Shown here piece by piece: positions 25,207 through 56,323 of a stretch of 64,000 nucleotides of DNA. Each line of letters begins with the position of its first letter. Positions within the stretch are counted from its first letter, which is position 1. Position numbers and translations under genes: made by a program. The notes beneath the pieces are model-generated. The model saw only the letters and a list, made by a program, of their open reading frames with translations. It was not told the DNA's origin and ran no database searches. The DNA is taken from the IMG/VR virus record IMGVR_UViG_3300020122_000238, positions 1 to 64,000 of that record, one strand, 5' to 3'.

Positions 25207-26255
25207 GCGGATCCATGGTGGCGTACAAGAAGACGTTGGCGGCTCTCGCAAAGAACGAGCGTATGAGGCTCGCAGCGGGTCCTGTATTGCCTCCTGACCC
25301 CTCTGGGGCACCTGGCGGGGCACCTCCTGGCGGGATGGCTCCTTCTCCTTTCGCGGACAATGCGAAGCGGACCATCCCGGCGAACTTCAAGTTCGACCCC
25401 CATTCGCTCAAGCCTCTTGCGCAGACCCTCTGGGCCTTGTCGATCTCCCTTGGCCACACACTGACGGCACACCGTCAGTTCGCCCGGGTGAAGTCTGCGA
25501 CGGTATCTCCGGATGGGATGCTGGGTGGACGTGGGTACGTCATGGGGGTCAAGGACATTCGGCAGCGTCTCTACGAGGCGTCCGAAGCTCTTTCGGCCAT
25601 CTGCGACACGATTCACGACGAGATCAACGCGCCCCATTGGAAGCCCCGGCTTGCCGAGCTGGAGAAGGATGAGGCGGATGACCTGAAGCGCCTTCTCACC
25701 GACGCCGAAGACAATCTCCAGAATCCTGAAGAGGAAGCTGAAGAGGACATGGAGGCTGTTGAAAACGGTGAGAAGGACAAGGGGCCTGGGGGAGGCAAGG
25801 ACGTCTCTTGGAAGCCTGGAGGGGATGAGCGTTTCGACAAGCAGGAACCTGCCTCTTCGGTCCCTTCGGGAGGCGACCAGGAGACTCTGCATCGAGGCGG
25901 GCCCAAGCCTCCGAGCAAGAAGCAGGCGTCTTCACGCTACTCCTACGACTACACAGGCGGTCCTGTGGCGGAGTCGGGTCTCCCGAACGATGGCGAAGAC
26001 GCTGTTGATCGGGCCGATTACTACCGGGGGCCGAAGGGCAACGGAGTCGCAATGGGGCCCGTGTCTGAGTCCGAGCTTCCTTCGGCGGATGGTGGTCCGC
26101 CGAAGGAGGACATCGACCTCCCCAATACCAGCCTTCGTGGGAAAGACCCCAGCAACCAACGTCCGAACTGGGATTCTCCGGTACACGAAACGTACATTCG
26201 CGACCCTTATCAGAGGCTCGACGATGCGATGATGAGGAGGGTTCCCCGTGGGTGA
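25203..26255 (+). CDS. Hypothetical acidic/Pro-rich protein
   Basis: Overlap-coupled 350-aa ORF. Confidence 0.75.
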   Translation: MSGSMVAYKKTLAALAKNERMRLAAGPVLPPDPSGAPGGAPPGGMAPSPFADNAKRTIPANFKFDPHSLKPLAQTLWALSISLGHTLTAHRQFARVKSATVSPDGMLGGRGYVMGVKDIRQRLYEASEALSAICDTIHDEINAPHWKPRLAELEKDEADDLKRLLTDAEDNLQNPEEEAEEDMEAVENGEKDKGPGGGKDVSWKPGGDERFDKQEPASSVPSGGDQETLHRGGPKPPSKKQASSRYSYDYTGGPVAESGLPNDGEDAVDRADYYRGPKGNGVAMGPVSESELPSADGGPPKEDIDLPNTSLRGKDPSNQRPNWDSPVHETYIRDPYQRLDDAMMRRVPRG

Positions 26256-28503
26256 TCTTGGCGATCTCGGTTCGTTCCTGAAGGATGGTTCTCTCGCAAA
26301 TCTCGACTGGCTCAACGTGAATGAGTCGGACTACCGGGATCTCGACAACCTCCCCAAGCAGAACCTCGATGTGTCTCCTGACCTGGAGGCCCTCTGGGGG
26401 CATGACGGGTCGAACCCGACGAGTTTCGTACCCAACCGGGGAGATGCTCCTCGAACGGTGGGTGATCTCAGCGAGCAAGGGAACTTGCGAGCGGGGCCGG
26501 AGGATGTCGTGAAGGTTGCTCGGCTTGCGTTGATGCAGTCGAGCGACACACAGAAATTCCGAGCGGCTCTTGTGGGACGCTTTGACCAGAACACGCTTCG
26601 AGCGAATCGTGCGGTCATTGCTGGAGTTCTCGCCGAACGCGGGCTTCTGGGCAAGCTCTACATCTCTGCCGAGGACTTTCCTGGTTGCCATCGCGGCTCC
26701 AAGAAGCCCATCGAATTCGTCCGCAAATTCGCAGGGGATGCCAGGTTCGTCCTCGCGAAGCCGGCGTGCTCGGGCTGCATTCATTCCCAGAAGAGCCCTG
26801 TGGGATCCACACAGACTTGCTCTGTCTTCCACAAGGAGATCCAGATCGAGGTCCCGTACTCGGATGCTCTCGCGGCGGAAGTCGAGCAGATGCAGCGAGT
26901 AAAGGGGAAGGATATTCAGCACTTGGCCTCCGTCCCTCGGGAACGGGTGCGCCTCGCCATGCTGGCTCCGAACGTTCGTCTCGAAGGCCCGGCACCTCAG
27001 CCGAAGCCTGTAGAGGCAACGGACCGACTTCTTCGTCCGATCGAAGAGACGCCTCAGCTACAGCTCCCGGTGGACCTCACCTACATCCGGGCAACAGCTC
27101 GGGAGACGGCGGCAAAGGCCTTCACCAAGGGCGGGCTCACGGTCGCACAAGCACAGGACACCTTCTTCGCAATTGCTCATTCTCAGGACGAGAGCTTCCT
27201 CCTCAAGATGGCCGAACGCATGGCCGACCTCGCAGATGTCGAGCTGGCTCCTCGTGTCTACCAGGGGATGGGGGAGCAGGCGAAACCTCAGCTCATTGAC
27301 AGGACCGAAGCGGAAGCTCAGCTCATTTCCGTCGCCAACCTCACGAAGAAGAAGGAGGCGGCCACCAAGATGATGCTGTCCGCCGACCGAGCCAGGCCGG
27401 TTGTGGAGCTGCTTCGTCGGGAGATGCTCAAGGGCCGAACTGCTGAAGATGTGGCGAGCATCTTGAAGCAGTCGTTTCAGTCGACGGACCTCCAGGCAAC
27501 CAAGGACCACTGGGCACCCATCTTCCGTGAGGCGGGTGTTTTCGGCGTGCTCTACTCCACACAGGAGAGCTTCGACGATTGCCGGACCGGGCATGACTTC
27601 CTCGCGAAGCACAACCCCGGCATCAAGGTGATGGTCGCCGGCTCCAAGTGTGGCGGGTGCATCTACAACAAGATCGGCCGATGCCTCCTGTACGGGAGGC
27701 CCTTGGTGGCGTCCGCTGAAGCGGTTCTCACCTGGGATACGGCAGAGCGCCAGCTTCAGGAGCACAAGGCATCGGGGCGTATACAGCCCTGGGGTCCCAC
27801 GGCTTCGGAATGGGGTGCTTCTCCTCGGGAGGCTCTCCAGAAGATGCATCGGTCGGCTTCTCTGAAGAGCGGGGCCACCTCGGCACCTACTCGAATGGAG
27901 GTCGTCAAGGCCTACCACAGCAGGTCTCAGGCGGTTCGAACCAGTGCGCTTGTCCGTCGAGACATCGTGAAGGTGGCCTCCCGCTTCATGAATGAGGGGC
28001 TCTACGGCAAGGACCTCCTCATGGCTCTCAAGGGGCGGTTCGACTCGCGGGACTTGGCGGCATCGGCGGAGGACTTGAGGCCGGTCATTGCGGAGCAGGG
28101 TCTCCAGGGGATCTACTTCGTCGATCCGAGCATCTACGACGATTACGGCAAGGGCTGTGAGGAGGCCTCCCGGCTGCATCGGGCTCGCCTGGTCGAGTAC
28201 GTGAAGATCGGCTCACGCTGTGGGTCGTGCGTTCTTCAGACTCGTACGGGCTTCTGCTCGAAGCTCAACAAGCCTCTGGTCAACGAGCCTCCCTACTACG
28301 ACAAGCTTGCCCAGCAACGGGAGATCATGGCTTCGGGAGCGGCTACCGAGATCCCGTTTAGCCAGATCATGAACAACGGTCAGTCGATGATGGTCGAGTA
28401 CGAGATGCAGCACAGCCCGATGGACATCGACCTCAACCCTGTCACGACGGCGGCTGATGTCGATGTCGAGCTGGGGACGGCCAACCAGGGGTTCAGGCTG
28501 TGA
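26248..28503 (+). CDS. Hypothetical protein with three Cys4 repeats
   Basis: Three E.G..G.[LY][YF]...C...CxxC...C units. Confidence 0.8.
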   Translation: MGDLGDLGSFLKDGSLANLDWLNVNESDYRDLDNLPKQNLDVSPDLEALWGHDGSNPTSFVPNRGDAPRTVGDLSEQGNLRAGPEDVVKVARLALMQSSDTQKFRAALVGRFDQNTLRANRAVIAGVLAERGLLGKLYISAEDFPGCHRGSKKPIEFVRKFAGDARFVLAKPACSGCIHSQKSPVGSTQTCSVFHKEIQIEVPYSDALAAEVEQMQRVKGKDIQHLASVPRERVRLAMLAPNVRLEGPAPQPKPVEATDRLLRPIEETPQLQLPVDLTYIRATARETAAKAFTKGGLTVAQAQDTFFAIAHSQDESFLLKMAERMADLADVELAPRVYQGMGEQAKPQLIDRTEAEAQLISVANLTKKKEAATKMMLSADRARPVVELLRREMLKGRTAEDVASILKQSFQSTDLQATKDHWAPIFREAGVFGVLYSTQESFDDCRTGHDFLAKHNPGIKVMVAGSKCGGCIYNKIGRCLLYGRPLVASAEAVLTWDTAERQLQEHKASGRIQPWGPTASEWGASPREALQKMHRSASLKSGATSAPTRMEVVKAYHSRSQAVRTSALVRRDIVKVASRFMNEGLYGKDLLMALKGRFDSRDLAASAEDLRPVIAEQGLQGIYFVDPSIYDDYGKGCEEASRLHRARLVEYVKIGSRCGSCVLQTRTGFCSKLNKPLVNEPPYYDKLAQQREIMASGAATEIPFSQIMNNGQSMMVEYEMQHSPMDIDLNPVTTAADVDVELGTANQGFRL

Positions 28504-28988
28504 TACACCTTGCTCGTCGTGTCCTATCTCGATATCTGAAGCAGATTCGAGGGACAATGCCTGTTGAGGACTATTACGATGTGGTGCATTCGGAAGATAT
28601 AGGCCAACAGGAAGGTTTCGTATTCCGTTTTCTACTCGCGGATCAACCCGTTGGACAACGGAAGCGAGATCGCGAGCTTGCGACCCCCATCAACCGTACA
28701 CGGGGGATTGACGAGAAAATTCAAAAGGACAACGCGAGGACGGATGATAGCCACGATGATGCTGTGGAGCCGGATCGACGGGACATCTTGCCTTCGGATG
28801 TCTTCTCTCCTTCGCCTCGCAGCATGAGCGTTCGCAACTTCGCCGAGACAGGCGAAGACCAAGACAAGGTGCTTCGTACCCAGGTCCACAAGGACAAGGG
28901 GTGGGACACCGTCAAAAATCTCTCTCAGTACCTCATTCGGACCGAAGGCGGAGGGGACACCCCTCCAGCCGGGAAGAACCTGAAGTAA
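28500..28988 (+). CDS. Hypothetical protein
   Basis: GTGA overlap; 162 aa. Confidence 0.7.
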   Translation: MIHLARRVLSRYLKQIRGTMPVEDYYDVVHSEDIGQQEGFVFRFLLADQPVGQRKRDRELATPINRTRGIDEKIQKDNARTDDSHDDAVEPDRRDILPSDVFSPSPRSMSVRNFAETGEDQDKVLRTQVHKDKGWDTVKNLSQYLIRTEGGGDTPPAGKNLK

Positions 28989-29679: not shown

Positions 29680-32600
29680 ATGGCATCCCCCAAAACCAAA
29701 GCTGAGAATGCTGGGACGAGCCTTGCAGCGCTCGTTCGAACAGCAGGGCAGCAGGCAAAGACAACGGTTGTTGAGAACCTCGAAAAGGAGGCCCTCTCCC
29801 AAATCGAGGTCGTCGATGGGGACCCCCCGGCTCAAGTACGGCCCGCGACGGCTCGTATTTTCAGCATCCTCGACTACATCGAACAGCCTTGGGGGTTGAA
29901 TCTCACCCTCTATCCTGTCCAGAAATTCATCGTCAAGCTCTACTACCACCTACCGTTGGAAAGCAAGGTCAAGACCATTGAGGTCAAGGACATGTTCAAT
30001 ACGGTTCTGTTGCACCATTTCACCGAAGTGGAGTACCTCAAGTTCTTGTACGAAGATGGCCGTTGCAACATCGGCGTACAGGATCATATACGCCGAGAAC
30101 TCCTACTTTCCATAGGTCGTCGTGGGGGAAAATGTGTTACAGGTGACACATTGGTCCTCACCGACCATGGTATCATTCCTATTGAAGAGCTGGGTACAGC
30201 TTCGAAAGAGGACTTCTCTGAATTGAAAGTTGGTGTTGCTCAGGAAGGATCTACCTTGTCTGAGTCCTCCCACTTCTACAATGGTGGGGTGAAGCCGACA
30301 TACCGTCTTCGTACGAAGGCTGGGTATTCGATCTGCGGTACGGGAAATCACCGCGTTCGAGTCATGACTTCCTCAGGCAAAGTCGACTGGCGGTATCTCG
30401 ATGAGCTACGTCAAGGAGACTTCGTCGCGATCCATCGTGGGACGGACTTGTGGGCTTCCGAGAATCTCGACCTTGAGCCTTTCCACAACGGAGATGGTCA
30501 CAAGGATGTCAAGCTTCCTGGTGTTCTGGATGAGAAGCTTGGAAACCTGCTCGGGTATCTAGTCGGGGATGGTACTTGGGGGGACGGGCACGCTATCTCT
30601 CTCACGGTCGAGCACCACGAGACGTGGCGTCATCTTCGATCTCTCATTTCAGAAGTGTTCGGGGCTCCCCGCGTCCAGATGGACAAGCGGACGAAGAATA
30701 CAGGGCGGATCGAGTTCTGTAGCGTCCGAGCCCGAAGGTTCCTTGACGCATTGGGGTGGTCTCTCGATTGTACCCGAGACACCAAGATGATCCCTTGGGC
30801 CATCCTACGGTCTCCCAAGACGGTCGTCTGTGCCTTCCTCAGGGGTCTTTTTGAGACGGACGGCTGCGCTGAGTCTGGTGGGAGGAAGGTTACTTTCTCC
30901 ACCGCCAGCTTCCAGTTGGCTCATGAGGTTCAGGTAGTTCTCTTGAACCTTGGGATTGTGTCTAGTGTTCACCGTAAATGGAACACCAAGACTGAGCGTT
31001 ATTACGCTTATCTGAATTTGCTTGGGGTTCGATCTCGACGTCGGTTCGCAGAACTCGTCGGATTTGATTCGCTTAAAAAGCAACGCCCCCTGCTTGCATC
31101 TCTTCTCGTTGCTGAGGAAGGGAAGTCGGATACAGAGAGCATTCCTCATCAGTACCGAAGGGTGCGAGATCTTCTTGAGTCTATTCCCAAGCGGAACCCG
31201 AGTCGTGGCGAGATGGGCTGGGGTCGATCGAAGCTCCGCCAGGCTATTGGTAATACCTGCAAGCCTGGTTCTGGGGAAGACTTGACGTATCATCGTCTAG
31301 CCAAAGCAATCAAAATCGCAGATGAGCTGGCGGCGAGGCATACCGAGATTGCTCATTTCGAAGAGCTTCTTCGTCTCGATTACTTTTACGATCCAGTGAC
31401 TTCTGTGGAAGAAGGGGAGGATCAGGTCTACGATCTCTCTGTCCCTGTGGGTACATCCTTTGTTGCCAACGGGATGACGAACCACAACACAACATTATCG
31501 GGAATTTTCGCGAGCTATGAGGTCTACCGACTTCTGAATTTGGGGAACCCCCAAGGATACTACGGTCTTCCGAACGGTAACCGTATTCAGATCGTCAGCA
31601 TCGCGACGGACAAGGATCAGGCAGGTCTTCTCTTCAACGAGGTGACCTCACACTTGAGTCGTTGCGAGTACTTCAAGCCCTACATCGCCAACAACACCCT
31701 GAGCCACATTCAGTTCAGGACCCCCCACGACATCGAGAAGTACGGGGCGACAAGCCGGCACGAGAACGGCAAGTTCACCTCGTTCAACGGCAAGGCGACC
31801 ATGAGGGTCACCTTCAAGTCCTGTATCGCGAAGGGGCTTCGTGGCGCGGGTAATGCTGTCGTCATCATGGACGAGATGGCCCACTTCAAGGACACGGGGC
31901 AGTCGAGTGCGAAGGACATCTACGACGCCGTCACTCCTTCTACCGCCGCTTTCTCCCCGAAGGACCCCAACGACACGACGAAGCCAATTGGTGACGTCGA
32001 GGCTCGGGTTATCGCTATTTCGTCGCCTCTCAACAAGCAGGGGAAGTTCTACGAGCTGTATCACCAAGCAATGAGCGGAGGTGAGCCGGCCAAGAATATG
32101 ATCGCGATTCAAGCTCCGACATGGGAAATCAATCCCACGGTTCCTGCCGACTACTACCGGCAGAAGTACCACGCCGATCCTCTGGTCTTCATGACCGAGC
32201 ACGGGGCGCAATTCTCTGATCGTGTCCGTGGTTGGATCGAACGAGAGGTGGATCTCCTGGACTGCATTGATGCAAACCTACGTCCCAAGGAGGCGGGGCG
32301 TCCTCGTGAACCACACCAGATGGGGATCGACATCGGGCTCATGGGGGACGGGACGTCGATTTTCATCACTCATGTCGAGAACAACGAGATCGTTCTGGAC
32401 TACCATGAGTCGTGGTATGCTGGTGTGGACTGGCGTGAGACGAATTCCCATCTTGGGGGTTCCCCCTCGATGGCCTATGCCCGCGGCCTGAAGGACGTCG
32501 AGCGCCTGGACTTCGAGGAGATCGGGAACTGGATCGAGAACCTGACCAAGAGGTTCTTCATCACCGCCGGGATCTTCGACCGTTGGAACGGTATCCCGCT

Positions 32601-33072
32601 GGAGCAGGCTCTCAACAAGAAGGGGCTCAAGCAGTTCAAGTCGGAACACTTCAAGCGCGACTTGTCGAGCCAGATATACCAGAACACGAAGCTCATGATG
32701 TTCGACCGGAAGCTCCGTCTCTATGACTGGCCCAAGGCCACGGTCGGGAACCGGCACTCTCCTTTCATTCAGGAGTTGCTGGGCCTTCAGGCTGAACAGG
32801 TCTCTCGGAACTTGGTCATCGTCTCGGCTTCTGAGACGGTTGGCCAGCATGACGACATGGCTGACGCCTTCGTTCGAGCCGTGTGGCTGTCTGCTCAGCG
32901 CATGACGAATACCCGGCTCGCTCTTGGTCCTTCGGACAGTCGCGGTCAGACGGGGATGGGCATGTCGCTCGCTCGCTACCAGATGGCTCGAGCCCGCAAC
33001 CACGGTGGGTTCTCACAGCGGGTCGTGCCGAGGGGCAGCGGCATGGGGCTTCGGTCGCGAGGAGGCCGGTAG
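29680..33072 (+). CDS. terL: Terminase large subunit, intein-containing
   Basis: Walker A GRRGGK|TT interrupted by the intein, Walker B VIMDEMAH, ISSP, nuclease GIDIG...HDDMADA. Confidence 0.92.
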   Translation: MASPKTKAENAGTSLAALVRTAGQQAKTTVVENLEKEALSQIEVVDGDPPAQVRPATARIFSILDYIEQPWGLNLTLYPVQKFIVKLYYHLPLESKVKTIEVKDMFNTVLLHHFTEVEYLKFLYEDGRCNIGVQDHIRRELLLSIGRRGGKCVTGDTLVLTDHGIIPIEELGTASKEDFSELKVGVAQEGSTLSESSHFYNGGVKPTYRLRTKAGYSICGTGNHRVRVMTSSGKVDWRYLDELRQGDFVAIHRGTDLWASENLDLEPFHNGDGHKDVKLPGVLDEKLGNLLGYLVGDGTWGDGHAISLTVEHHETWRHLRSLISEVFGAPRVQMDKRTKNTGRIEFCSVRARRFLDALGWSLDCTRDTKMIPWAILRSPKTVVCAFLRGLFETDGCAESGGRKVTFSTASFQLAHEVQVVLLNLGIVSSVHRKWNTKTERYYAYLNLLGVRSRRRFAELVGFDSLKKQRPLLASLLVAEEGKSDTESIPHQYRRVRDLLESIPKRNPSRGEMGWGRSKLRQAIGNTCKPGSGEDLTYHRLAKAIKIADELAARHTEIAHFEELLRLDYFYDPVTSVEEGEDQVYDLSVPVGTSFVANGMTNHNTTLSGIFASYEVYRLLNLGNPQGYYGLPNGNRIQIVSIATDKDQAGLLFNEVTSHLSRCEYFKPYIANNTLSHIQFRTPHDIEKYGATSRHENGKFTSFNGKATMRVTFKSCIAKGLRGAGNAVVIMDEMAHFKDTGQSSAKDIYDAVTPSTAAFSPKDPNDTTKPIGDVEARVIAISSPLNKQGKFYELYHQAMSGGEPAKNMIAIQAPTWEINPTVPADYYRQKYHADPLVFMTEHGAQFSDRVRGWIEREVDLLDCIDANLRPKEAGRPREPHQMGIDIGLMGDGTSIFITHVENNEIVLDYHESWYAGVDWRETNSHLGGSPSMAYARGLKDVERLDFEEIGNWIENLTKRFFITAGIFDRWNGIPLEQALNKKGLKQFKSEHFKRDLSSQIYQNTKLMMFDRKLRLYDWPKATVGNRHSPFIQELLGLQAEQVSRNLVIVSASETVGQHDDMADAFVRAVWLSAQRMTNTRLALGPSDSRGQTGMGMSLARYQMARARNHGGFSQRVVPRGSGMGLRSRGGR
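30133..31488 (+). mobile_element. Intein with LAGLIDADG homing endonuclease (452 aa)
   Basis: Starts CVTGDT, block B TGNH, LLGYLVGDG and FLRGLFETDG, ends VYDLSV...ANGMTNHN followed by Thr+1. Confidence 0.95.
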
Positions 33073-34364: not shown

Positions 34365-34366
34365 CC

Positions 34367-34933: not shown

Positions 34934-35359
34934 ATGCCGCACCAAAATCCCGCTCGTATGGCTCCCGAGGAGATTGTTCGCGAGATCCGGACCCTACAGA
35001 GTGGGATCGAGCAGAACACCTTGCGAATCTCGGAGTTGTCCTTGTCCCTCTACAGCAGGGCTCGCCGTCGGAAGCTGGCTCTACCTGGGCAAGAGGAGCC
35101 GAAAGACACGGTCCCCTACATCGTGTTCGCGAACTCGTGGGCGAGGATGTCCAGCTCTCTTCGTAACGGCGTGCAGAGGATGGCACGCACCGATAGGGTC
35201 TTCACTCGGCATACCATCCCCGACCTGGAAGAGACCCCCAAAAAGGAACGCCCCGCTGTTCTCCCGGTCTTGGCCCCGGAGTTCGAGGACGACGATCCGA
35301 TGGAAGACCTTGTGTCCCTCTATGGTGGGGAGATCGTAAACGATGCCCGCCCGCGGTAG
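34934..35359 (+). CDS. Hypothetical protein
   Basis: 141-aa ORF before the portal gene. Confidence 0.65.
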   Translation: MPHQNPARMAPEEIVREIRTLQSGIEQNTLRISELSLSLYSRARRRKLALPGQEEPKDTVPYIVFANSWARMSSSLRNGVQRMARTDRVFTRHTIPDLEETPKKERPAVLPVLAPEFEDDDPMEDLVSLYGGEIVNDARPR

Positions 35360-37181
35360 AATTTCCAACGCCACCACGCGATTCACTTCGATGCCGTCGC
35401 AAAACCGTCGGCATACAACTCCACATATTGCGCAGGGGGAAGGTGGGGGTCGTACCCCGCTCACCCCCAACGAGCGTGAAGCCCGGCGGCAGCAACGTGC
35501 CATACGTCAAAACAACCGCACCGCGGCGATGAATGGCGCGTTCTCGGTGGACAACATCGGGGGCTCCAACACGGTTCAGGCTGGAGCACAGCAGACGTTC
35601 TCCGTCCAGATGTCCACGGACTTTCTGGAGCTTCCGCAGTCGATTCAAGAGAAGCGGGAGATTTACAAGCACTTTTACAACTCGGATCCGATCGTTGGGC
35701 AGGCTATCGACCTGCACACGGAGCTGCCTCTCTCGAAGGTTCGTCTGGCTACTCCGAAGCCCACCACAACTCCGAAGGGTTTCAAGAGCCCCGAGGACTA
35801 CGGCAAGTACATCCTCTCTCGCTTCGAGAAGATGTGTAGGAAGGTGAAGCTGTTCCAGCGACTCATCACGGCTGTCCACCACTACTGGCTCGACGGGACA
35901 TGCTGCATCTTCGCTGAGGACTCGGATGTCCAGGTTCCGTCTGAAATTGGGTATGACCGTCAAGTTGAGCTTCGAAGCTCGATCGATGACGAAGGCAACC
36001 CGATTGAAACGAAGGAAGACATCTGGGTTGAGCGTCCTGATCGAGAAGAGCAGGAACTCGCGCATTACCAGAAGAACTACAAGGGGTGGGACCGGCTGAT
36101 CGTTGTCCCTGTCGACCAGATCCGAGTCACGGCGTGGTCGTTCTCCGACCGCTTTCGTGTGGAGCTGATTCCCTCGGACCGTGATCGGGCAATCGTCGAG
36201 CAGGCTCGCATGGGAGACCCGGATGCCGAAGAGATGGCCTCCGACATCCCTGATGAGGTTCGCGAGCACATCGAGGATGGGCGGCTCATCCCTCTTGGAA
36301 CGGACCCCGACGAGGGGAGCTTTGCGTTCATCCTGACAGGACGCAAACAAGCAGGGGAAGAGCTGGGGGCGAGCATCCTCGATCGTTGTTTGAGAACTTT
36401 ATTTTACCGAGAGAAGCTCCGCCAGGCGCAGACGCAGATCGCCAGCCGGGCCATGACTCCGAAGCGCATCGTGTGGGCCGAAGACATCTCGGACGACGAT
36501 TGCGAGCAGCTTCGAGAGCAGGTCGACCTTTCGTTGGTCGACCCCGACTACTCGATCGTGGCCAACTACGAGATCCACTGGGAAGAGATGGGGTCGAAGG
36601 ACCGCCTCTTGGACCTCTCGGGGGAGTACGAGATCACGGATCGCCAGCTCCACGCGGGGCTTGGCGTCACGGAATCGCTTCTCTCGGGGGAGTCTCTCTA
36701 CTCGGGAGACCGGCTCAAGCTGGAGGTCATCAACACCCGCTACTTGTTCCTCCGGGAGATCCTTCAGGAGTACGTCGAGGAGTACCTGTTCAAGCCGGTT
36801 GCCCGTCGCATGGGCTTCGTCGAGAAGGATGAATGGGGCGAAGAGGTCGTGCTTTTTCCCAAGCTGTCGTTCACCCGGCTACCTCTTCGAGACAGCCAAG
36901 ACACGTACGACGCGCTCTTCAACCTCTATCAAAAGGGCTCAATCTCGATCGATGTCATCCTGGAAATGTTCAACATCGACCCGAACGACACCAAGCTCAA
37001 GATCGAAAAGGATATGTTTACCACCAACGACGCGACCTTCAACGAGGTCATGCGTGGCATCTATGGTGCGGTGGGGCAAAAGCTGGCTGACTCGACGGAC
37101 GTCACTGAGAAGATCGCTGCCTACCTCAAGCTCAAGATGACGGCACAGCCTGAAGGCGAGGGTGAGGATCGATTTGGTTGA
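35343..37181 (+). CDS. Portal protein
   Basis: FYNSDPIVGQAIDLHTELPLS, GASIL, LGV.ESLLSGE; size and position between terL and the head genes. Confidence 0.8.
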   Translation: MPARGRISNATTRFTSMPSQNRRHTTPHIAQGEGGGRTPLTPNEREARRQQRAIRQNNRTAAMNGAFSVDNIGGSNTVQAGAQQTFSVQMSTDFLELPQSIQEKREIYKHFYNSDPIVGQAIDLHTELPLSKVRLATPKPTTTPKGFKSPEDYGKYILSRFEKMCRKVKLFQRLITAVHHYWLDGTCCIFAEDSDVQVPSEIGYDRQVELRSSIDDEGNPIETKEDIWVERPDREEQELAHYQKNYKGWDRLIVVPVDQIRVTAWSFSDRFRVELIPSDRDRAIVEQARMGDPDAEEMASDIPDEVREHIEDGRLIPLGTDPDEGSFAFILTGRKQAGEELGASILDRCLRTLFYREKLRQAQTQIASRAMTPKRIVWAEDISDDDCEQLREQVDLSLVDPDYSIVANYEIHWEEMGSKDRLLDLSGEYEITDRQLHAGLGVTESLLSGESLYSGDRLKLEVINTRYLFLREILQEYVEEYLFKPVARRMGFVEKDEWGEEVVLFPKLSFTRLPLRDSQDTYDALFNLYQKGSISIDVILEMFNIDPNDTKLKIEKDMFTTNDATFNEVMRGIYGAVGQKLADSTDVTEKIAAYLKLKMTAQPEGEGEDRFG

Positions 37182-37208: not shown

Positions 37209-40181
37209 GTGATGTTGCATTGGGCGACGAAGGATACGCATGAGCGGGAAGAGGAAGAGGCCGAGCGCCTTGTCCGTCCCGCCCCGAAGATCAAGCCTCC
37301 TCGGCGGGATCGTCGGCGGGAACAGGTGCGTCCTGAATCTGATCCGGACCTGAAGAACGAGTCCTCCAAAGACTTTTCCCTCAACTACAAGGGTTCTTTG
37401 AAGGGTCGTATCGTCGATCGCTTCCTCGAAGCCGCGAAGGACAACGGGAAGGTCAAGGTCGTCCGCAAGGAGACCGGAGAGACCACCTACATCAAGCCGG
37501 AGACGTTGAAGCAACGCTCCGACGAGTACTCCTTGCCCGAGGATGGGGACTCGGGTCCGGCATGGGCGCCCGAGGATCACGAAGCCCACATGCAGGGCAA
37601 GAAGCTCTGGGATGCTTCGAAGGCTGATCCCGAGCTGGCGTCGGTCTTCAAAGATCTGCTCAACCCGACCTCGCAAGGTGGCGGGTATGTGGCGAAGAGC
37701 ACCCCCAATCTGCCCGCAGAGATCATGATGCGGGGGCGTCCTCTCCCCGAAGGCGTCAAGACTCTTGGGCAGCTCGTCAAGGTCTTGAACCAGGGGAAGA
37801 AGAACCCCCCCAAGGCTCAAGAAGCACCCAAAGCTCCGGAGCCCCCCAAGGCGGAAGCTCCGGAAGCAGAGAAGGGTCCTGAAGAGGCTCCGAAGGGTCT
37901 TCCCCCTTCGGAGCCTCTTCAGGACCCTGATGAAGCTTCCGAGAAGCCCAAGGAAGACGCGAAGAAGCCCGAGAAGGCTCCTGAAGAGCCTCCGAAGGGC
38001 AAGGGGAAGACTCCAGAGCCGAAGAGGCGTCAGGCGGAAGAGTGGGAGCACATGGCCGCGAAGTCGGCCATTCTCGAAAACCTACCCCGTGGCGCCATGC
38101 GGGAGGGCTTGCTCGATGCGAACCTCCATCCGGATGATGTGGCGGATATCCTCGCGACCTACCATGCGGCCCGCTCGGGGGACATGGGGGCAAAGGCGGC
38201 GGAGAAGCTGCTCGGGAAGGCTCGGCATTGGTTTCAGCCGGACCCCACGAAGGTGTCTCTACCGAAGACGGGGAAGGACCAGGCTGGGAATGAGGTCCCG
38301 TTCGCCGAGCTTTCGCCTGATGAGCAGGCTGAGGCTGGGGCTCAACACCGAAATCGAACGGTGGCTTTGAGTCTTGCTGCGCATGACCAGGTGACTCGGT
38401 CGCTCACCCGTACGTTGGGGGCTCCCCCGGCGTTGGCTGACTTACTTTCCGCCTTCCTTCTACAGCAGAAGCCGCCGAAGGAAGGCGAGAAGGTCGACCC
38501 CGAGAAGGATGCTGCTCAGTCGAAAGATCTTGCCTCGAAGGTCTTCCAGAAGGTTCTGATGGAGGGCAAGGATGAGAAGATCGCCCCGGGGACGATCAAG
38601 AACGTCCTGGAGTTCACCCAGAGCAACCCGGCAGCTGAGCGTCTCGCGGTCTCCTACTTCCAAGCTCGTGACTACCAGACAGCTCGGTCTCGATTTCTAG
38701 ACCCATCGTCTCCCGAGCACATCTCGGAGCACCAAGGACCTACGGACATTGCTCGTGGGGTGGTCGATGGCAGCCGGTTCCTCATGGATCGCTCTCGGCT
38801 TTACCCGCCCATGGCTATCACACAGGACCCTGCGGGAGCTTTCCGGAACCGAGTGCTGAAGCATGTTCAGACGCTCAACCCGGAGAAGTACCCCTTCGTT
38901 CGGAATCATGTCGACAAGTACGAACGTCAGCTCTTCGATTCGGAGACTGCCCGTCACGAGAAGCTCGTGACGCGGACCATGGATCGGTACGAGAAGGTTG
39001 TTCAGAAGGTTCTCGACAAGCACGACAAGAGTATTGAAAAGCTCCGCTCGAAACATGAGGGGACCCTCGACGAGTACAAGGAGAAGGCCAAGGTCTTCGA
39101 CAAGGACTACCGAAAATACGTCAAAGAGAAGGTCAAGTTCCAGAAGTTCGTGCAAGAAGCCATGCGCAAGGGGAAGGACTATCGCGAGTCTCCTACCCAG
39201 GGGATGGAGCCGCCGAAGCCCCCTGAGCCGCCGAAGCCCCCGCCGGATCTGGACTTGCCTGACGTCCCTGAACTGCCTCCGGAACCGGAACTCCCCGAGC
39301 CTCCGGCGAAGCCGGTCCGGTATGGGTTGGGGGATGAAGACCAGGAAGAGGAGCGGGAACGACTCTGGGACGAGCAAAATCGCCAGATGACGGCCTCGTT
39401 TTCTTCTTATTCAGGGAGCAAGTCGATGGGTCTTCAGAACCGCCAGGCTGTCTATTGGGGGGTTGCCCCCTACCCGAAGGGGCATGAGGGCTTCGCCCCC
39501 TATACGAAGTGGAATCAAGTCCACGATCGTGATCTTGGGGAGAAGGATTTCACGAAGGTCCTCAAGTCGGCAAGGGAGTGGCTCAAAGCCCCTGTGTTGT
39601 CGAAGTCTGTGGAAGGGATTGAGCGGGACACCCAGCTACGGGCCGCTCTTGACCTCGCCATTCAAACGCTCGAAGACGGGAGGTACTCTGCGGGTTTCGA
39701 CCCCAAGACGTACAACTCTCTTCTCGCTCGGTTGGTTGGGAAGTCCGAAGACGAAACGCTGTTGACGGTCCATGCAGCCGCTGCTCACGGATCCGTTTAT
39801 GTTGCTACAGGAGAAGAACCCATGAGCGCATCCGCCGTAATCCGCAAGCAGGCCGCCGAAATGGCATCCACCAACCCCTCCGCCGCGTACGATCTCATCG
39901 TCCTCGCGGACAAGGTCGCTCAGGAAGAGCAACAGGAGAAGGCTCAGCAGTCCCAGGAACAGCAGAAGCAGGGTGGACAGGTGCCTCCCCAGTTCCTTGA
40001 GCACATGAAGGGCAAGGGGGACAAGAAGGACGACCAGAAGGACGACCAGGGTCAGGAACAGCAGAAGCAGGCTGCCTCCTACCGTGCCTTGAAGGCGTCG
40101 GTCATCGACTTCGCCACGAAGAACCCGGCGATGCGTCCCCACATCCGGCCGATTCTCCAGACCATCAAGAACCTCGGCTGA
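37209..40181 (+). CDS. Large Pro/Lys/Glu-rich putative internal head protein
   Basis: 990 aa with low-complexity linkers and multiple KxA motifs. Confidence 0.75.
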   Translation: MMLHWATKDTHEREEEEAERLVRPAPKIKPPRRDRRREQVRPESDPDLKNESSKDFSLNYKGSLKGRIVDRFLEAAKDNGKVKVVRKETGETTYIKPETLKQRSDEYSLPEDGDSGPAWAPEDHEAHMQGKKLWDASKADPELASVFKDLLNPTSQGGGYVAKSTPNLPAEIMMRGRPLPEGVKTLGQLVKVLNQGKKNPPKAQEAPKAPEPPKAEAPEAEKGPEEAPKGLPPSEPLQDPDEASEKPKEDAKKPEKAPEEPPKGKGKTPEPKRRQAEEWEHMAAKSAILENLPRGAMREGLLDANLHPDDVADILATYHAARSGDMGAKAAEKLLGKARHWFQPDPTKVSLPKTGKDQAGNEVPFAELSPDEQAEAGAQHRNRTVALSLAAHDQVTRSLTRTLGAPPALADLLSAFLLQQKPPKEGEKVDPEKDAAQSKDLASKVFQKVLMEGKDEKIAPGTIKNVLEFTQSNPAAERLAVSYFQARDYQTARSRFLDPSSPEHISEHQGPTDIARGVVDGSRFLMDRSRLYPPMAITQDPAGAFRNRVLKHVQTLNPEKYPFVRNHVDKYERQLFDSETARHEKLVTRTMDRYEKVVQKVLDKHDKSIEKLRSKHEGTLDEYKEKAKVFDKDYRKYVKEKVKFQKFVQEAMRKGKDYRESPTQGMEPPKPPEPPKPPPDLDLPDVPELPPEPELPEPPAKPVRYGLGDEDQEEERERLWDEQNRQMTASFSSYSGSKSMGLQNRQAVYWGVAPYPKGHEGFAPYTKWNQVHDRDLGEKDFTKVLKSAREWLKAPVLSKSVEGIERDTQLRAALDLAIQTLEDGRYSAGFDPKTYNSLLARLVGKSEDETLLTVHAAAAHGSVYVATGEEPMSASAVIRKQAAEMASTNPSAAYDLIVLADKVAQEEQQEKAQQSQEQQKQGGQVPPQFLEHMKGKGDKKDDQKDDQGQEQQKQAASYRALKASVIDFATKNPAMRPHIRPILQTIKNLG

Positions 40182-40616: not shown

Positions 40617-40710
40617 TCCGGCTCTGTCCCGAAATGAACTCCGACGAGAAGTCTTCAATGGGGTCGTCCCACGAAATGACCATCCTGGTGAAGTGGCGGG
40701 AAGGGCTGAC

Positions 40711-42030: not shown

Positions 42031-43518
42031 ATGGCCTTCCTACGATACGCAAACGCAGCCATCGTCAAGCCGGACATCAAGTTCGCCGGCTGGGATGAGG
42101 TCAAGAGCAAGAGTCAGACGAAGGGGAACCCCTTTGCTGATCGTGCCGCTGCCAAGGTCGTCTTCCAGAAGTACGACCCTTCGAGCTTCATGCTCTCCCA
42201 CTGCACGATCATCGCCTCGGTCGACACAGAGGAGAGCCCGGCAGAGCTTGGGGATCAGGTTGTTGCGGGCTTCCCGATCAACCGCAAGTACAAAGATTGG
42301 CTGATCGCCCCCAAGACGTCGAAGTATATCAACAACAACCACGACGCCTGGGAGCGGAAGCTCCTCTTGTCGTGCTTCCGTACGTTCATCGGCGGGGAGA
42401 ACTACGTCGAACACATTCAGATCCCGGAGATGTCTCGCGGGAAGATCATCGATGCAGCGGCTCGGGACATCGGGGACTCCATATATGTGGACATTCTCGT
42501 GGCCACCGATAGGAAGCACCGCCCCCTCATCTCGGCCATCACGAGCGGGCAGCTTCAGACCCTCTCGATGGGGTGCCAGGTTGAGTTCACCGTCTGTACG
42601 AAGTGCGGCAACGTCGCCTACGACGAGACGCAGCTCTGCCCCGACATTCGTTACGCCAAGGGCAATGAATGGGTCGACGACTTCGGCAACAAGCGTCGAA
42701 TTGCAGAGCTGTGCGGGCACATCGCAGACGAACCCGGGAGCGTCAAGTTCATCGAGGCGAGCTGGGTTGCAAACCCAGCTTTCACTGGTGCCGTCCTCCG
42801 CAGCATCCTATCTCCCGAAGAGATTGCTTCTTATGGGGGTCAGATTCAGGCGGCATTCGCTGGGGGCACCCGGGTGGCAAATCCGGATCTCTTCCAGAAG
42901 GCTGCCTACAGCCTCATCCGGCAAGCTCAATTTGGGGGTGACGATACTCAGGAAAAGGAAGATGTCACCAAGCCGCCTACTCCCGCCCCCAAGGCACCGG
43001 AGAAGGCTCCCTTTGACAAGGCCGTTGATGACCTCGCAGCTACCCTCCAGGAGAAAGCTCTGGAGAAGGTGCGTGGGGACATGGCCAAGAGCGATTCCCC
43101 GATTGGGGACGCGAACAACAACGACAACCTCATCAAGTCCGCTCTCCGGAATCCTATTTGGAAAGAGGTGGCTCGTTCCTTGGTGGCGACTGTTGGGGGT
43201 GGTAGGTCTGCACGGCAAACCCTTTTGGGTCTCATCCTCCTCAAGACGGGTGGTTGGGGTGCCGTGCAAGCTTCGAAGATGCTCAGCGGACGTGAAATCC
43301 TGGCTGTTTCTCGTATTGTGGACCTTGCAAGCAAGCGAACCATGATGGCGGGAGAGGGTCGGATCTATCGAGCCGTGGTCGCGGTTGGGGGGACGTCCCG
43401 CTATCGTGATGTCACGCAATACATGACGGCTTGCTGTCATGCCCTCGGACGTGAGCCCTCCGAGGACGAGAAGAAGGCACTCTTGGTCAAGGGTCAACTC
43501 TTCTCGCTGGGTGCGTGA
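42031..43518 (+). CDS. Prohead (capsid maturation) protease
   Basis: NNNHD, NYVEH, GKIIDA, LSMGC (catalytic Ser candidate), EASWVANPA; directly upstream of scaffold and MCP. Confidence 0.75.
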   Translation: MAFLRYANAAIVKPDIKFAGWDEVKSKSQTKGNPFADRAAAKVVFQKYDPSSFMLSHCTIIASVDTEESPAELGDQVVAGFPINRKYKDWLIAPKTSKYINNNHDAWERKLLLSCFRTFIGGENYVEHIQIPEMSRGKIIDAAARDIGDSIYVDILVATDRKHRPLISAITSGQLQTLSMGCQVEFTVCTKCGNVAYDETQLCPDIRYAKGNEWVDDFGNKRRIAELCGHIADEPGSVKFIEASWVANPAFTGAVLRSILSPEEIASYGGQIQAAFAGGTRVANPDLFQKAAYSLIRQAQFGGDDTQEKEDVTKPPTPAPKAPEKAPFDKAVDDLAATLQEKALEKVRGDMAKSDSPIGDANNNDNLIKSALRNPIWKEVARSLVATVGGGRSARQTLLGLILLKTGGWGAVQASKMLSGREILAVSRIVDLASKRTMMAGEGRIYRAVVAVGGTSRYRDVTQYMTACCHALGREPSEDEKKALLVKGQLFSLGA

Positions 43519-43607: not shown

Positions 43608-44885
43608 ATGCGTACACGCACCACCTGGAACCGAGATCAGATCAAGCAGGGGTCGTCGCGGACGGCAGAGGATCCCCGGTCCATGAATCAGGACCACCTC
43701 AGCCAACAGCCTTCGGCGGACAAGTACACCAACGGAGATCCGTCTTCATGGGCGGAGGACATTCACTCCCCCAATGAGTGGGAGAAGGAGTACTCGGGTG
43801 GGCAGACCAAGCGTGACGAGATCGGCATGCCGGAGAAGCGCCCCGAAACCTACAACCATCCTGAGAAGACGGCTGCGGCCGGGAACGAAGAGTTCTACAT
43901 GAAGAAGGCCGATTTCACCGTCAAGCTCGCAAGGATGATGCTCGGCAACACGGCACCTGAGTCGGCCATCGAGGATCAGGCGGTCAATCTGATGCATGTG
44001 CCGGATACGGCCCTCATCGCGACCTACGCCAGCCTCTCCGAGCGTCTCGCTCAGCAGGGTCAGTCACAGGAAGAGAAGGATCAGGAGCAGACTCAGCAGA
44101 AGCAGGCTGCCCTCCAGCTCCGCGCTCAGAAAGCCTTCCAAGCTGGTGATCTCGCCGGAGCCAAGCTGGCTCTCGATGAGGCCCTCGCCATGCCGGCCCC
44201 CACTGCGACGACTCCTGTCGACACCTCGACGGCCCCCTCGACCAGTGTCGCTGCGCCCGCGGCCATGCAGAGCACCCAGGCCCCCGCGGTGTCTGCGGAC
44301 ATCATGCAGGTTGTCCAGGCGGCTGTCACCGCTGCTCTCAAGCAGGCGGGTGTCCTTCGCGCGAACGATCAGCAGATGCCGCAACAGCAGCAGGTCTCGC
44401 AGCAGCAGATGCCCCAGATGCAGCAGTCGCAGCAGCAGATGCCGCAACAGCAGGTCTCACAGCAGGCTCCTCCGATGCAACAGCAGTCGGATGACGCTCT
44501 CCTCGACGACCTCATGGGCGGGATGGGCGGCGGCGACATGTCCGAGTCGGACATCGAGCTGGACGCCCCTCCGATGGACCTCGGCGATGGTGGGGAGATG
44601 CAGCTCGGTCCGGAGGACGACGTCCTCCGGACCCTCTTCGCAACCCAGGAGTCGCAGGACGCGGAGCAGGCACAGCAGGATCAGCAGGGCGCGCAACAGC
44701 AGAAGCAGGCTGGCATGGGCCGCACGGCTTCGACTCGCACGGTCGGGACTCGTCCCACGGGCGGCGTCTCGCGGGTCGGTGGCGGAGTGGCTGGCTCGGG
44801 CAATCGCTCAGGCAATGACATCGACAAGCTCTCGGCCCTCTGGCCCTCGGCTCCCGATGTTCGCGACGCCTTCAACATGAAGTGA
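43608..44885 (+). CDS. Putative scaffolding protein (Gln-rich)
   Basis: Low-complexity Q/A/D-rich protein between the protease and capsid genes. Confidence 0.6.
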   Translation: MRTRTTWNRDQIKQGSSRTAEDPRSMNQDHLSQQPSADKYTNGDPSSWAEDIHSPNEWEKEYSGGQTKRDEIGMPEKRPETYNHPEKTAAAGNEEFYMKKADFTVKLARMMLGNTAPESAIEDQAVNLMHVPDTALIATYASLSERLAQQGQSQEEKDQEQTQQKQAALQLRAQKAFQAGDLAGAKLALDEALAMPAPTATTPVDTSTAPSTSVAAPAAMQSTQAPAVSADIMQVVQAAVTAALKQAGVLRANDQQMPQQQQVSQQQMPQMQQSQQQMPQQQVSQQAPPMQQQSDDALLDDLMGGMGGGDMSESDIELDAPPMDLGDGGEMQLGPEDDVLRTLFATQESQDAEQAQQDQQGAQQQKQAGMGRTASTRTVGTRPTGGVSRVGGGVAGSGNRSGNDIDKLSALWPSAPDVRDAFNMK

Positions 44886-45651: not shown

Positions 45652-46533
45652 ATGAACAACCAGGTTTCCAACGAGCTGAAGCAGCAAATCATCAGCGAGT
45701 ACATCAAGACGGCCGCCGGCCGTGCAAAGCTCGCTGCGTCGATGATCCAGCCCCTTCGGCTGCGTCGTGACTACACCGCGGTCGGTCGCAAGACCTTCCT
45801 CGTCGAGCAGCTACCGGATGGAGCGTTGCCGATCTATGACAAGGACCCCGACGTCACGGCCTTCGTGGTCGGCGAGGAGGGTCAGAACATCCTCGCGATC
45901 CAGAAGCCGCGTCGGGTCATCTTCCCGCTGTTTGAGATCGCCTCGAACCCCGAGATCCCGCTCACGCAGATCAAGGAGCGTCGCTTCGACCTCATCGAGC
46001 GTTCGCAGGACCTCGCGAAGGCCCAGATCCAGGCCGCCGAAGATGAGCGCGTCTTCACGGTTCTCGACTCGATCGCCGTTTCCGGCTTCGACACCCTCCC
46101 CGGGCAGTCGAACCCTGACGTCGCGGTGGTGGCCCCCATCTCTCCGGCCGTCCTCGCGGACGCGTTCGCCGAGATCGAGCGTCACGACCTTCGGGTTGCC
46201 CGGATCTACATGAACGCGGTCGACTACGCGGACATCCGCAAGTTCGGCCGTGACATCCTGGACATCGAGAGCCAGGCCACCCTCCTCAAGACTGGCCTCC
46301 AGGCCGTCCTCTGGGGTGCGCAGATCATCACGTCGAGGCTCGTCCCCGTCGGGTTCGTCTACATCTGCGCGGAGCCCGAGAACTTCGGTCGCTTCCCGGT
46401 CCGCACGGAGCTGACGGTCCTCTCGGCCGACGATCCCAAGGCCCGCACGATCGGCTTCTCGTGTTTTGAGAACGTCGGCATTGGTGCCTTCAACCCCAAG
46501 GCACTCACTCGGGTGGTTGTGCAGCGTTTCTAG
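45652..46533 (+). CDS. Major capsid protein (HK97 fold)
   Basis: GAGG RBS, strong codon bias, follows protease-scaffold-decoration; IYMN...LWGAQI A-domain pattern, ends ENVGIGAFNPKA; followed by a terminator. Confidence 0.85.
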   Translation: MNNQVSNELKQQIISEYIKTAAGRAKLAASMIQPLRLRRDYTAVGRKTFLVEQLPDGALPIYDKDPDVTAFVVGEEGQNILAIQKPRRVIFPLFEIASNPEIPLTQIKERRFDLIERSQDLAKAQIQAAEDERVFTVLDSIAVSGFDTLPGQSNPDVAVVAPISPAVLADAFAEIERHDLRVARIYMNAVDYADIRKFGRDILDIESQATLLKTGLQAVLWGAQIITSRLVPVGFVYICAEPENFGRFPVRTELTVLSADDPKARTIGFSCFENVGIGAFNPKALTRVVVQRF

Positions 46534-55227: not shown

Positions 55228-55911
55228 GTGCATACAGTGTCGGGCACCTCGGATGGAGTGGGAGACTTTACTGGGACGCTGATTGATGTTGGCATGACTG
55301 GGGTTGTGTTCGGAGTGGGGGCTCTGCAAAGTTCACTCAGCATCGAGATCAACCCGACGGCTCATGTTTTTGGGGGTGTCGATCTGCAAGGTGACGGGGC
55401 CCTCCTTCGCTCGCTGATTGGGGACGTCTTCGGTCATGGTGGGCTCCAGCTATCCGAGCTTGAAGCTCTCGCGGGGATTGGGATCTTGGCGGGCTACCTG
55501 GATCTCGTACATGTCCCGAGGCCTATCCGTTGTCCCTGGAGGTCCAGGGATTTCCGGCTCGGTCATGTCTTCGGCCGTGGCGATTTGAGCTTCTTGTTGC
55601 GACGCGACGGGGCATACAGTTCGCCGTATCGAGTGACCTACAGTTTGTTCCAGGTGCATCCTGGGGGATCCCAACAGCTTGTGGGATCTCCTGAACGCTA
55701 CCCTGTTATGGCGGCGGTCGGGGAATACTACGCCACATTCCGGTCCGATGATGTGGGCCAGCCGGGGGATTGGTTGATCCGATGGCGGTATCAACTAAGT
55801 TCTTCTACTCAACAAGAGGTTGAGGACTACAGGTTCCGTATCCTCGATGCGGTTCTTGCGAAAGATCCAAACGATGGCACTCCCCGAAAGACACGACGCG
55901 GCTGGTTCTGA
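55228..55911 (+). CDS. Virion protein; C-terminal domain paralogous to the 56325 N-terminus
   Basis: GRGDL...VTYSL...VG.P.R.P....VGEYYA...G...IRW. Confidence 0.65.
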   Translation: MHTVSGTSDGVGDFTGTLIDVGMTGVVFGVGALQSSLSIEINPTAHVFGGVDLQGDGALLRSLIGDVFGHGGLQLSELEALAGIGILAGYLDLVHVPRPIRCPWRSRDFRLGHVFGRGDLSFLLRRDGAYSSPYRVTYSLFQVHPGGSQQLVGSPERYPVMAAVGEYYATFRSDDVGQPGDWLIRWRYQLSSSTQQEVEDYRFRILDAVLAKDPNDGTPRKTRRGWF

Positions 55912-56323
55912 TCTGACCTCCCGGGTGGCTCATCGCTACTCGGGGTCAAAGAAGGTCGCCCTCAACCAGGACTTCTGGTTGAACTCCGACGATGTTGCCG
56001 AGGTGTGCCCTCCTTGTGGGAAGCGCATGGCTTCGTTGGGGATCCGTCGCATCCGAGCATCAGTCATCTACGGGCAGGACATGCTCAAGCTCGCAGCCAC
56101 AGTTCATCTGGCTTCGGAGTGGAAAGACCTCCCTGAAGGTTGGACTGATGACTCCAGGAAGAAGTTCTGGGAGAGCATTGGGGGATCCGTTGCAAGGTGC
56201 ATCGCGAAGGTTCAGGGGCATGTGACTGACCCCCAGGCTTTCGCTGAGGCCCTCAAAGATCGCATCGAAGGCAAGTCGGGGTGGTCTGAGCCAAGGGCGT
56301 CAGAGTCTCCCTTGGAGGACTGA
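55874..56323 (+). CDS. Hypothetical head-region protein
   Basis: SRVAHRY motif, CPPC; start uncertain. Confidence 0.65.
   Translation: MALPERHDAAGSDLTSRVAHRYSGSKKVALNQDFWLNSDDVAEVCPPCGKRMASLGIRRIRASVIYGQDMLKLAATVHLASEWKDLPEGWTDDSRKKFWESIGGSVARCIAKVQGHVTDPQAFAEALKDRIEGKSGWSEPRASESPLED

Follow-up and report, generated by a model that had tools for sequence, protein, structure and literature searches.

A short peptide recurs at the ends of otherwise unrelated proteins encoded by a huge phage, in IMG/VR virus record IMGVR_UViG_3300020122_000238. The stretch analysed here (the window; 64,000 nt) is the first 64 kb of that record, a single contig of 275,300 bp with a GC content of 58% and a completeness of ~58% (CheckV estimate). 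About 14 proteins of the contig carry the peptide, which we call the tag, and their relatives in hundreds of related uncultivated phages do likewise. The tag, ~12 residues long with RVxxR[F/Y] at its core, is selected at the protein level, conserved in orthologues, modular, position-independent and restricted to one clade. We propose that it loads internal or ejected proteins into the capsid, a reading to which we assign a probability of about 0.55; the capsid as the destination, and the identity of the receptor there, are what we infer.

Recurrence, selection and form of the tag

Genes of the contig were called with an in-house codon-usage heuristic; the start codons of the genes at contig positions 136207, 167304 and 180939 are uncertain. 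The strict pattern RV..R[FY] occurs 10 times in the called proteins, compared with 1.25 +/- 1.1 times (maximum 5) in 300 within-protein shuffles. A six-frame scan of the contig gave 13 coding-frame matches on the + strand, most of them a few residues after a start codon; the majority lie outside the window, at 136, 162, 166, 167, 178.7, 180.9, 181.3 and 182.5 kb of the contig. To avoid circularity, a 14-column profile was trained on relatives alone, using 52 copies from the loci around their major capsid protein (MCP) genes. The top nine matches of this profile to the contig are all in a coding frame on the + strand. At a threshold of at least 14 bits it finds 10 matches in the called proteins, compared with a mean of 0.15 (maximum 1) in 20 shuffles, or ~70 times the shuffled rate. 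Among all open reading frames (ORFs) of at least 80 codons it finds 14, compared with a single antisense match in Tunturi_5, a Tunturiibacter phage with a 309-kb genome of the same GC content and similar size; a profile scan of Bacillus phage G returned no match.

The motif was picked after looking at the sequence, and RV.AR comes no higher than the top 25 when 1.6 million four-residue patterns are scanned without bias, with low-complexity and zinc-finger patterns ahead of it. Both points speak for chance recurrence, and raw over-representation alone is therefore insufficient; it is position, the independently trained profile and conservation that single the motif out. Without any choice of start codons, 8 of the 14 copies lie no more than 41 codons from the upstream in-frame stop, compared with 11% of random coding positions (binomial P = 3.8e-5). 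At the conserved R, V, R and F/Y, different copies use different synonymous codons (CGT, CGG, AGG, CGC etc.), so that selection acts on the peptide and not on a DNA element; indeed, the differences at every conserved residue rule out a DNA-level repeat that is simply translated through. A shared paralogous domain would be just as hard to reconcile with the data, given that the bearers have nothing else in common and that orthologues keep the motif across at least 120 sequences. With the ~70-fold excess found by a profile built from relatives, and only one antisense match in GC-matched Tunturi_5, chance, paralogy and a DNA repeat are excluded as the origin of the motif.

A sequence-only reading of the window had put forward six peptides as copies of the motif, and all are present in the + strand translation: ARRVLSRY (28512-28535), GRIVDRF (37404-37424), GARVIQRF (41427-41450), ATRVLARF (41954-41977), TSRVAHRY (55916-55939) and VKVASRF (27967-27987). 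Their placement near a terminus or domain edge, also claimed there, is borne out. ARRVLSRY spans residues 5-12 of ORF 28500-28988, for which the GTG at 28500 is the sole upstream start codon; GARVIQRF spans residues 4-11 counted from the ATG at 41418, and TSRVAHRY residues 15-22 from the ATG at 55874; GRIVDRF spans residues 66-72 of the 990-aa protein encoded after the portal gene; and ATRVLARF begins 22 residues before the stop codon of 41687-42022. Five of the six fit the relatives-trained profile, at 15.0-25.5 bits. VKVASRF does not belong to the family: it scores -7.5, the best score anywhere in its 751-aa protein is 3.2, and it is best taken as a chance resemblance. The same reading had described recurrence in dissimilar proteins, and it had seen no copy in replication genes. 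The shuffling results put this recurrence above background, and the ligase, RecD2, RecA, clamp-loader and 5'-3' exonuclease genes in window 1-26 kb indeed carry no copy. Its interpretation, an amphipathic loading tag of internal head proteins, holds in part, in that the peptide is selected, amphipathic, associated with termini, found on unrelated proteins and located partly in the head module, but VKVASRF is not a member and the head region contains only about half of the tagged genes. One strict match within window 1-26 kb, at 23603, scores only 10.8 bits and was set aside as chance. This match, RVRHRF, falls in the helix-turn-helix of a sigma-70-like region-4 protein (23072-23782) encoded just upstream of the head module, which may be a phage late sigma factor.

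The consensus of 89 distinct copies is L(-3) A(-2) x R V [A/V/L] [A/...] R [F/Y] [L/K] x A. Placed on a helix, the L, V and F/Y and the A, A and L share one face beside a ridge of two arginines; the tag is an amphipathic helix of three turns, which a flexible linker connects to the rest of the protein. In an AlphaFold2 model of a tagged 370-aa ADP-ribosyltransferase (ART; predicted local distance difference test score, pLDDT, 87.4), residues 3-11 are helical and residues 1-22 have a pLDDT below 50, so that in the model the tag helix is detached from the body of the enzyme. The tag thus occurs at either terminus on a disordered linker, as judged from this model and from shifts between the N and C termini in ART and peptidase orthologues, which is the placement of encapsulin cargo-loading peptides. 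As a short N-terminal peptide on several unrelated proteins of one phage, it also has the placement of the capsid-targeting sequence (CTS) of T4, with C-terminal and internal copies besides. Genes of the same locus that have no detectable similarity to each other each carry it.

Several resemblances were rejected. The tag is not a Tat signal peptide: its two arginines are four residues apart, and an acidic or polar linker follows, with no hydrophobic stretch. The N-terminus of p125 (40239-40616), SRILGRL, is not a copy; its orthologues keep a different helix, [IV]LxRLD, in which the first arginine is lost and the aromatic is always Leu. RVVVQRF at the MCP C-terminus has the wrong spacing and is not conserved, the MCP of the relative G005 ending in ...RLVVTRV.

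Tagged proteins within and beyond the head module

The head module, 30 kb of the window, holds 5 of the ~14 copies, all on the + strand. Directly upstream of the genes for the putative small terminase (TerS) and the large terminase (TerL), p162 (28500..28988), a small conserved protein with 150 homologues and no Pfam or PHROG match, carries the core RVLSRY at residues 7-12 (28518..28535; context IHLARRVLSRYLKQ; profile score 17.9), and its ORF opens only 20 codons upstream of the tag. At least 92 of 120 homologues have the tag at the N-terminus, where independent gene calls begin 3-16 residues before the core. In an alignment of 60 sequences conservation reaches at least 90% at R7 and V8, and R11 never varies. 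In G005, a complete 407-kb relative with ~10 tag copies, the gene before TerS is likewise the p162 orthologue.

Next to the portal gene, p990 (37209..40181), a long, charged, low-complexity protein with orthologues in 43 loci (median identity 37%), is likely an internal or ejection-type protein. It is syntenic with gp328 of Tunturi_5, annotated as a 'DNA ejection protein', by position only and without sequence similarity. Its core RIVDRF, at about residue 67 (37407..37424; score 16.5), lies inside a conserved N-terminal domain (...LSLNYKxVGGS-x2-4-RVxxR[FYW]) and is kept in most of ~30 orthologues and degenerate in a few; some orthologues have two or three tags, with several copies in L021, L028, L030 and L050.

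Two small tagged genes lie between the p243 and prohead protease genes, and homologues of both were found only in the closest relative, L004. The first, p90 (41418..41690), is a variable accessory gene encoding a coiled-coil-like protein with RVIQRF at residues 6-11 (41433..41450; score 21.5). In L004 this core reads RVLQRF, a variable position having changed while R, V, R and F are kept. Immediately upstream of the protease gene, p111 (41687..42022) has a C-terminal copy, RVLARF, 20 residues before the stop codon (41960..41977; score 25.5; RVFARF in L004). The same spot in other relatives is taken by small tagged genes without detectable similarity to p90 or p111 (L012 5980, L054 5711, L019 5076). 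Further along, in the structural region, p149 (55874..56323) is a small Cys-containing protein with RVAHRY at residues 17-22 (55922..55939; score 15.0), and all 13 of its 13 homologues have SDL[AT]xRVAxRYSGSK at residues 7-19. Tagged genes directly follow the MCP gene in L076, L028 and L019.

Copies beyond the head module cluster at 162-168 kb and 178-183 kb of the contig, the first of these clusters surrounding the gene for a phage ClpX. Pfam and PHROG scans of most bearers gave no match, and those bearers that could be identified are enzymes: the ART, a HELGH peptidase and a type IB topoisomerase (TopoIB). The 370-aa protein at contig 162090-163202 is, judging from its conserved residues, an R-S-ExE ART, with R278, S304/S305 and E350-x-E352 invariant or nearly so in 23 sequences. 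Its homologues have precomputed Pfam DRAT matches, and Atlas structure rows lead to DRAT, ADPrib_exo_Tox and the MuF-ART cluster. A Foldseek search of the PDB returned R-S-E ARTs for almost all of the top 50 rows, none of them individually significant (best E = 0.011). Most ART orthologues keep an N-terminal tag followed by an acidic linker; P0165, P0172 and P0173 have lost it and instead have a tag at the C-terminus, preceded by a basic linker, and P0158 has a tandem pair. In the product of this gene (L002:7090-8202), a conserved stretch of ~65 aa (KGGVPxRWxEWLD...PNPNxETR...VSFSTALK...EYxEWAKKNP) separates the tag from the ART domain; it is a second portable module, since a GNAT protein of another contig, P0174, shares it.

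The peptidase is a 626-aa protein with a HELGH (HExxH) motif and weak hints of MA-clan, LPD1 and M90 peptidases. Here it has tags at both ends; the G003 orthologue has one at the N-end plus another copy, that of G005 one at the C-end, and that of G002 copies close to either end. TopoIB (Pfam Topoisom_I, E = 8e-27) carries an N-terminal tag in all five large relatives, to which G001 and G002 add a C-terminal copy. In the contig its second copy is internal, at residue 294, and is followed by an added domain of 165 aa; in G005 the tagged TopoIB gene lies between the terminase and portal genes. A search of the related loci with TopoIB found nothing, and a direct search of the genomes of the five relatives found it in 5/5. 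The core of this enzyme (contig 181656-183032; L003:6656-8032), conserved in these five, is of the eukaryotic or poxvirus type. Further bearers in relatives are a GNAT acetyltransferase (L028) and a DUF5662 protein.

Some neighbouring features deserve mention. The ART gene is part of a single co-directional block (contig 160559-166434) whose other products are an RNA ligase, a carbon-nitrogen hydrolase that weakly matches a NAD-synthetase PHROG, ClpX and a metallophosphoesterase. The ClpX (contig 163376-164623; L002:8376-9623) is conserved in all five large relatives and in phage G, and Tunturi_5 has none; in G005 its ORF is 777 aa long, with an insertion of ~360 aa that is possibly an intein. 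At contig 136207-137078 (L001:6207-7078), a tagged N-terminus, MYSDLVHRVADRFQ..., reads well for ~60 codons, after which coding potential shifts to the -1 frame and runs on through a gene of 263 aa. A frameshift, overlap of two genes or an error of assembly may explain this. The first residues at this locus, SDLVHRVA, match the N-terminus of the gene at 166469.

Proposed capsid loading and its alternatives

Phages of the clade with MCPs at least 90% identical place the tag on either end, and sometimes on both ends, of unrelated proteins. We propose that the tag would dock on one conserved receptor inside the assembling prohead, candidates being the inner face of the MCP, the C-terminal extension of the protease and the scaffold-like p425. 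The head would thereby take up tagged proteins, which would reach the host together with the DNA, in a manner comparable to the CTS of the T4 internal proteins and Alt, or to the cargo-loading peptides of encapsulins. We rate capsid loading most likely because the tag is on conserved head-module proteins encoded next to terminase, portal and protease (within the window, tagged genes flank those for TerS, the portal and the protease); because its range follows the capsid lineage; because the enzyme cargo, above all the Alt-like ART, matches known packaged effectors; and because a terminal helix on a linker, at either end, matches the targeting peptides of T4 and of encapsulins. Phages deliver such effector domains with their DNA, as T4 Alt, MuF-fused toxins and polyvalent proteins illustrate.

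The phyletic range bears on both destination and receptor. Phages with an MCP at least 90% identical have the tag in abundance, whereas it is sparse in LR745208.1, a curated 485-kb metagenomic phage (MCP 82% identical; four copies, including an N-terminal one of 30.6 bits). It is absent from Tunturi_5 (MCP 48%; the lone profile match is antisense) and phage G (39%), and in phage G not even a Lys-tolerant pattern shows N-terminal enrichment. Given that LR745208.1 is tagged without a phage ClpX, and that phage G has ClpX without the tag, the tag tracks the capsid lineage and not phage ClpX. Four features are common to the contig and LR745208.1 but not to Tunturi_5 or phage G, namely the p243 C-terminus, the ~200-aa C-terminal extension of the protease (which aligns in tagged LR745208.1 and not in the two untagged phages), p425 and p210. 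This phyletic profile suggests these four as candidate receptors, alongside the MCP. A single complex prediction, of the MCP (89-row alignment) together with two copies of the ClpX zinc-binding domain and ART residues 1-40, gave an ipSAE of 0.00, and we use it neither for nor against binding.

Comparison with known systems is informative in both likeness and difference. As in T4, where the CTS is found on IPI-III and on Alt, which is a head-packaged ADP-ribosyltransferase (PMC3012670), unrelated proteins of one phage have a short N-terminal amphipathic peptide in common, an ADP-ribosyltransferase is among the cargo, some of the genes belong to the head cluster and others lie elsewhere, and the module follows the logic of portal, small core proteins, protease, scaffold and capsid protein. 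Nonetheless, the huge-phage tag has no sequence similarity to the CTS and has a sharper consensus, with R, V, R and F/Y nearly invariant; it is also found at the C-terminus or at both ends, shows no consistent cleavage site after it, and its packaging is putative. No PHROG or Pfam link between the bearers and the T4 internal proteins was found. Encapsulin cargo-loading peptides are likewise terminal peptides on flexible linkers, at the N- or C-terminus of unrelated enzymes, and there too docking is presumed to be on the inner face of an HK97-fold shell whose protein is highly conserved relative to its cargo. However, those of family 1 are extended and rich in Gly, Ser and Leu, whereas the huge-phage tag is an Arg-rich helix, and the shell here is a DNA-filled head with portal and scaffold, whose MCP is a candidate receptor. 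MuF-fused toxins and polyvalent proteins also tie ART, metallopeptidase and acetyltransferase domains to head genes, and Atlas rows link our ART to the MuF-ART cluster and our peptidase to LPD1; there the effectors are fused to a head protein, whereas here separate proteins have a common 12-residue tag.

Several findings weigh against capsid loading. We found no virion proteomics for this uncultivated clade that would directly place tagged proteins in virions. Only about half of the contig's tagged genes belong to the head module; the rest (162-168 and 178-183 kb) are interspersed with genes for RNA ligase, CN-hydrolase, ClpX, a phosphoesterase and a methylase. N-terminally tagged genes within 10 kb of the MCP gene in relatives number ~0.02 per kb (with the total length of the loci estimated), which is not above the contig average. 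Lastly, no common protease cleavage motif was seen after the tag, unlike in the T4 sequence.

The main specific rival is that the tag is a recognition or tethering signal for the phage's own ClpX, either a degron by which host ClpP would remove these proteins at a set time or a peptide that, like the XB peptide of SspB, binds the zinc-binding domain. ClpX signals are short, terminal and basic-hydrophobic, and the ClpX-binding peptide of E. coli SspB is LRVVK; like the tag, such signals are end peptides on flexible linkers. The contig and 5 of 5 large relatives encode a complete ClpX (zf-C4_ClpX, AAA_2 and D2-small domains; contig 163376-164623), tagged genes directly adjoin it in the contig and in four of the five, and tags are ~6-fold sparser per kb in LR745208.1, which has no ClpX (4 vs 14 copies per genome). 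Nonetheless, the adjacency is one conserved gene order and not independent evidence from each genome, and tag and ClpX do not co-vary: the ClpX of phage G is 47% identical, yet that phage has no profile match, and LR745208.1 has N-terminal tags of 30.6 bits without a phage ClpX, a mismatch that would still allow host ClpX as the partner. Moreover, C-terminal copies begin 13-29 residues ahead of the stop codon and other copies are internal, whereas known C-terminal degrons are the last residues of a protein, and the contig, at ~58% completeness, has no ClpP gene. We consider a ClpX signal quite unlikely as the whole explanation. The two ideas could be combined if ClpX unfolds cargo for packaging; indeed, it has been speculated that ClpX or ClpA of jumbo phages translocates unfolded proteins or aids virion assembly (Iyer et al., 2021; PMC7824862).

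Docking on a hub other than the capsid, such as DNA, a replication or assembly compartment, the terminase/portal motor, a host chaperone or a host target, is possible if unlikely. Basic-aromatic helices bind many kinds of partner, the receptor is only at the candidate stage, the cargo includes a DNA enzyme, TopoIB, and half of the tagged genes are outside the head module. Such a hub would not be expected from the confinement of the tag to one capsid lineage and its presence on conserved head-module proteins, nor from a set of ART, peptidase and acetyltransferase that resembles co-injected effectors and not replication factors, the replication genes that were tested being untagged. Very unlikely, in our view, is that the motif is a recognition or cleavage site of the prohead protease for propeptides, tails or domains, a function that may coexist with targeting, T4 being an example. 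The sites known for this protease class are short, with Glu or a small residue at the end, and are unlike the tag, an amphipathic helix of 12 residues that includes an aromatic and two invariant arginines. In addition, the usual substrates, the MCP and the scaffold-like protein, have no copy, and exchange between termini behind long linkers suits docking better than trimming. What a protease site would explain is the placement at termini and domain edges (TopoIB residue 294, p990 residue 67), which resembles that of the sites cut by gp21 in T4 head proteins and by gp175/gp245 in those of phiKZ and SPN3US (PMC10052503, PMC5694885), as well as the protease gene among the tagged genes and the acidic residue that often, though not always, follows the tag within 2-4 residues of the aromatic.

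Loading of the capsid, if correct, would have practical consequences. Metagenomic huge phages cannot yet be grown, hence their early-acting genes, among hundreds of unknowns, are not known; if the tag marks proteins loaded into the head, the candidate injected enzymes of each phage could be listed from its genome, ~14 proteins here. It would also make the filling of very large capsids with protein open to experiment, and would supply a ready peptide with which to load foreign proteins into phage heads. In its most far-reaching form, which we regard as highly improbable, the system would be one of sequence-addressed effector delivery, in which any tagged protein is sent to the prohead, possibly unfolded by the phage ClpX, and then injected with the DNA; if true, the whole injected effector set (ART, metallopeptidase, topoisomerase, acetyltransferase and many unknowns) would be readable from sequence. 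Even if the destination is different, for example ClpX, the tag remains a short linear motif that is used across a clade, has a clear consensus and serves many clients, which is rare in phages. We found no description of it in the searchable literature.

The head module and its relatives

Nearly every gene of the window is on the + strand. Genes for replication and recombination occupy window 1-26 kb (RNR-like protein, NAD-dependent ligase, RecD2 helicase, RecA, SMC-like ATPase, clamp loader and 5'-3' exonuclease), and window 26-57 kb is the head-morphogenesis module. Its genes run in the order 751-aa protein, p162, putative TerS (so named by its position before TerL alone), TerL with an intein, three small paralogues, portal, p990, p125, p243, p90, p111, prohead protease, p425, p210 and MCP. 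The main landmarks are all on the + strand: TerL (29680..33072; phrog_17415, phrog_2; Pfam Intein_splicing, LAGLIDADG_3), the portal protein (35343..37181; phrog_16240, E = 1.4e-21), the prohead protease with its helical C-terminal extension of ~200 aa (42031..43518; phrog_18299), p425 (43608..44885), which from its Q-rich, low-complexity sequence and its place between protease and MCP appears scaffold-like and is conserved in 77 loci, and the 293-aa MCP (45652..46533; phrog_2522, E = 6e-52).

Across at least 80 IMG/VR contigs, many with a length of 100-530 kb, MCP identity is 90-100%, and the other head proteins of these loci (portal, protease, scaffold-like protein etc.) are only 37-66% identical, so that the MCP is unusually frozen relative to its neighbours. 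Besides LR745208.1, Tunturi_5 and phage G, the more distant relatives by MCP identity include cluster C-type mycobacteriophages (~28%). This pattern places the phage in a large uncultivated clade of huge phages. In the GenBank phage collection no match was found, whether by nucleotide sequence or with the 425-aa protein p425 as query.

An intergenic k-mer scan for a common late promoter found some enriched 8-mers (TTGCTGTAGGAC-like, GGTGTAAG and GGTTGATCC), in a setting where the gene calls leave excess 'intergenic' DNA. The intein that interrupts TerL includes a LAGLIDADG homing-endonuclease domain. Between terminase and portal (33327-34900) lie three tandem paralogous genes for beta-rich proteins of 171-215 aa that have GGWxGGQGVQ...YTYxSRMAGP...LRGYWTxEDEWTLSGDP in common. 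Lastly, p243 (40693-41424) is a conserved head-module protein with a zinc-ribbon-like CxxC...C motif in its C-terminal part, the only part that is common to LR745208.1.

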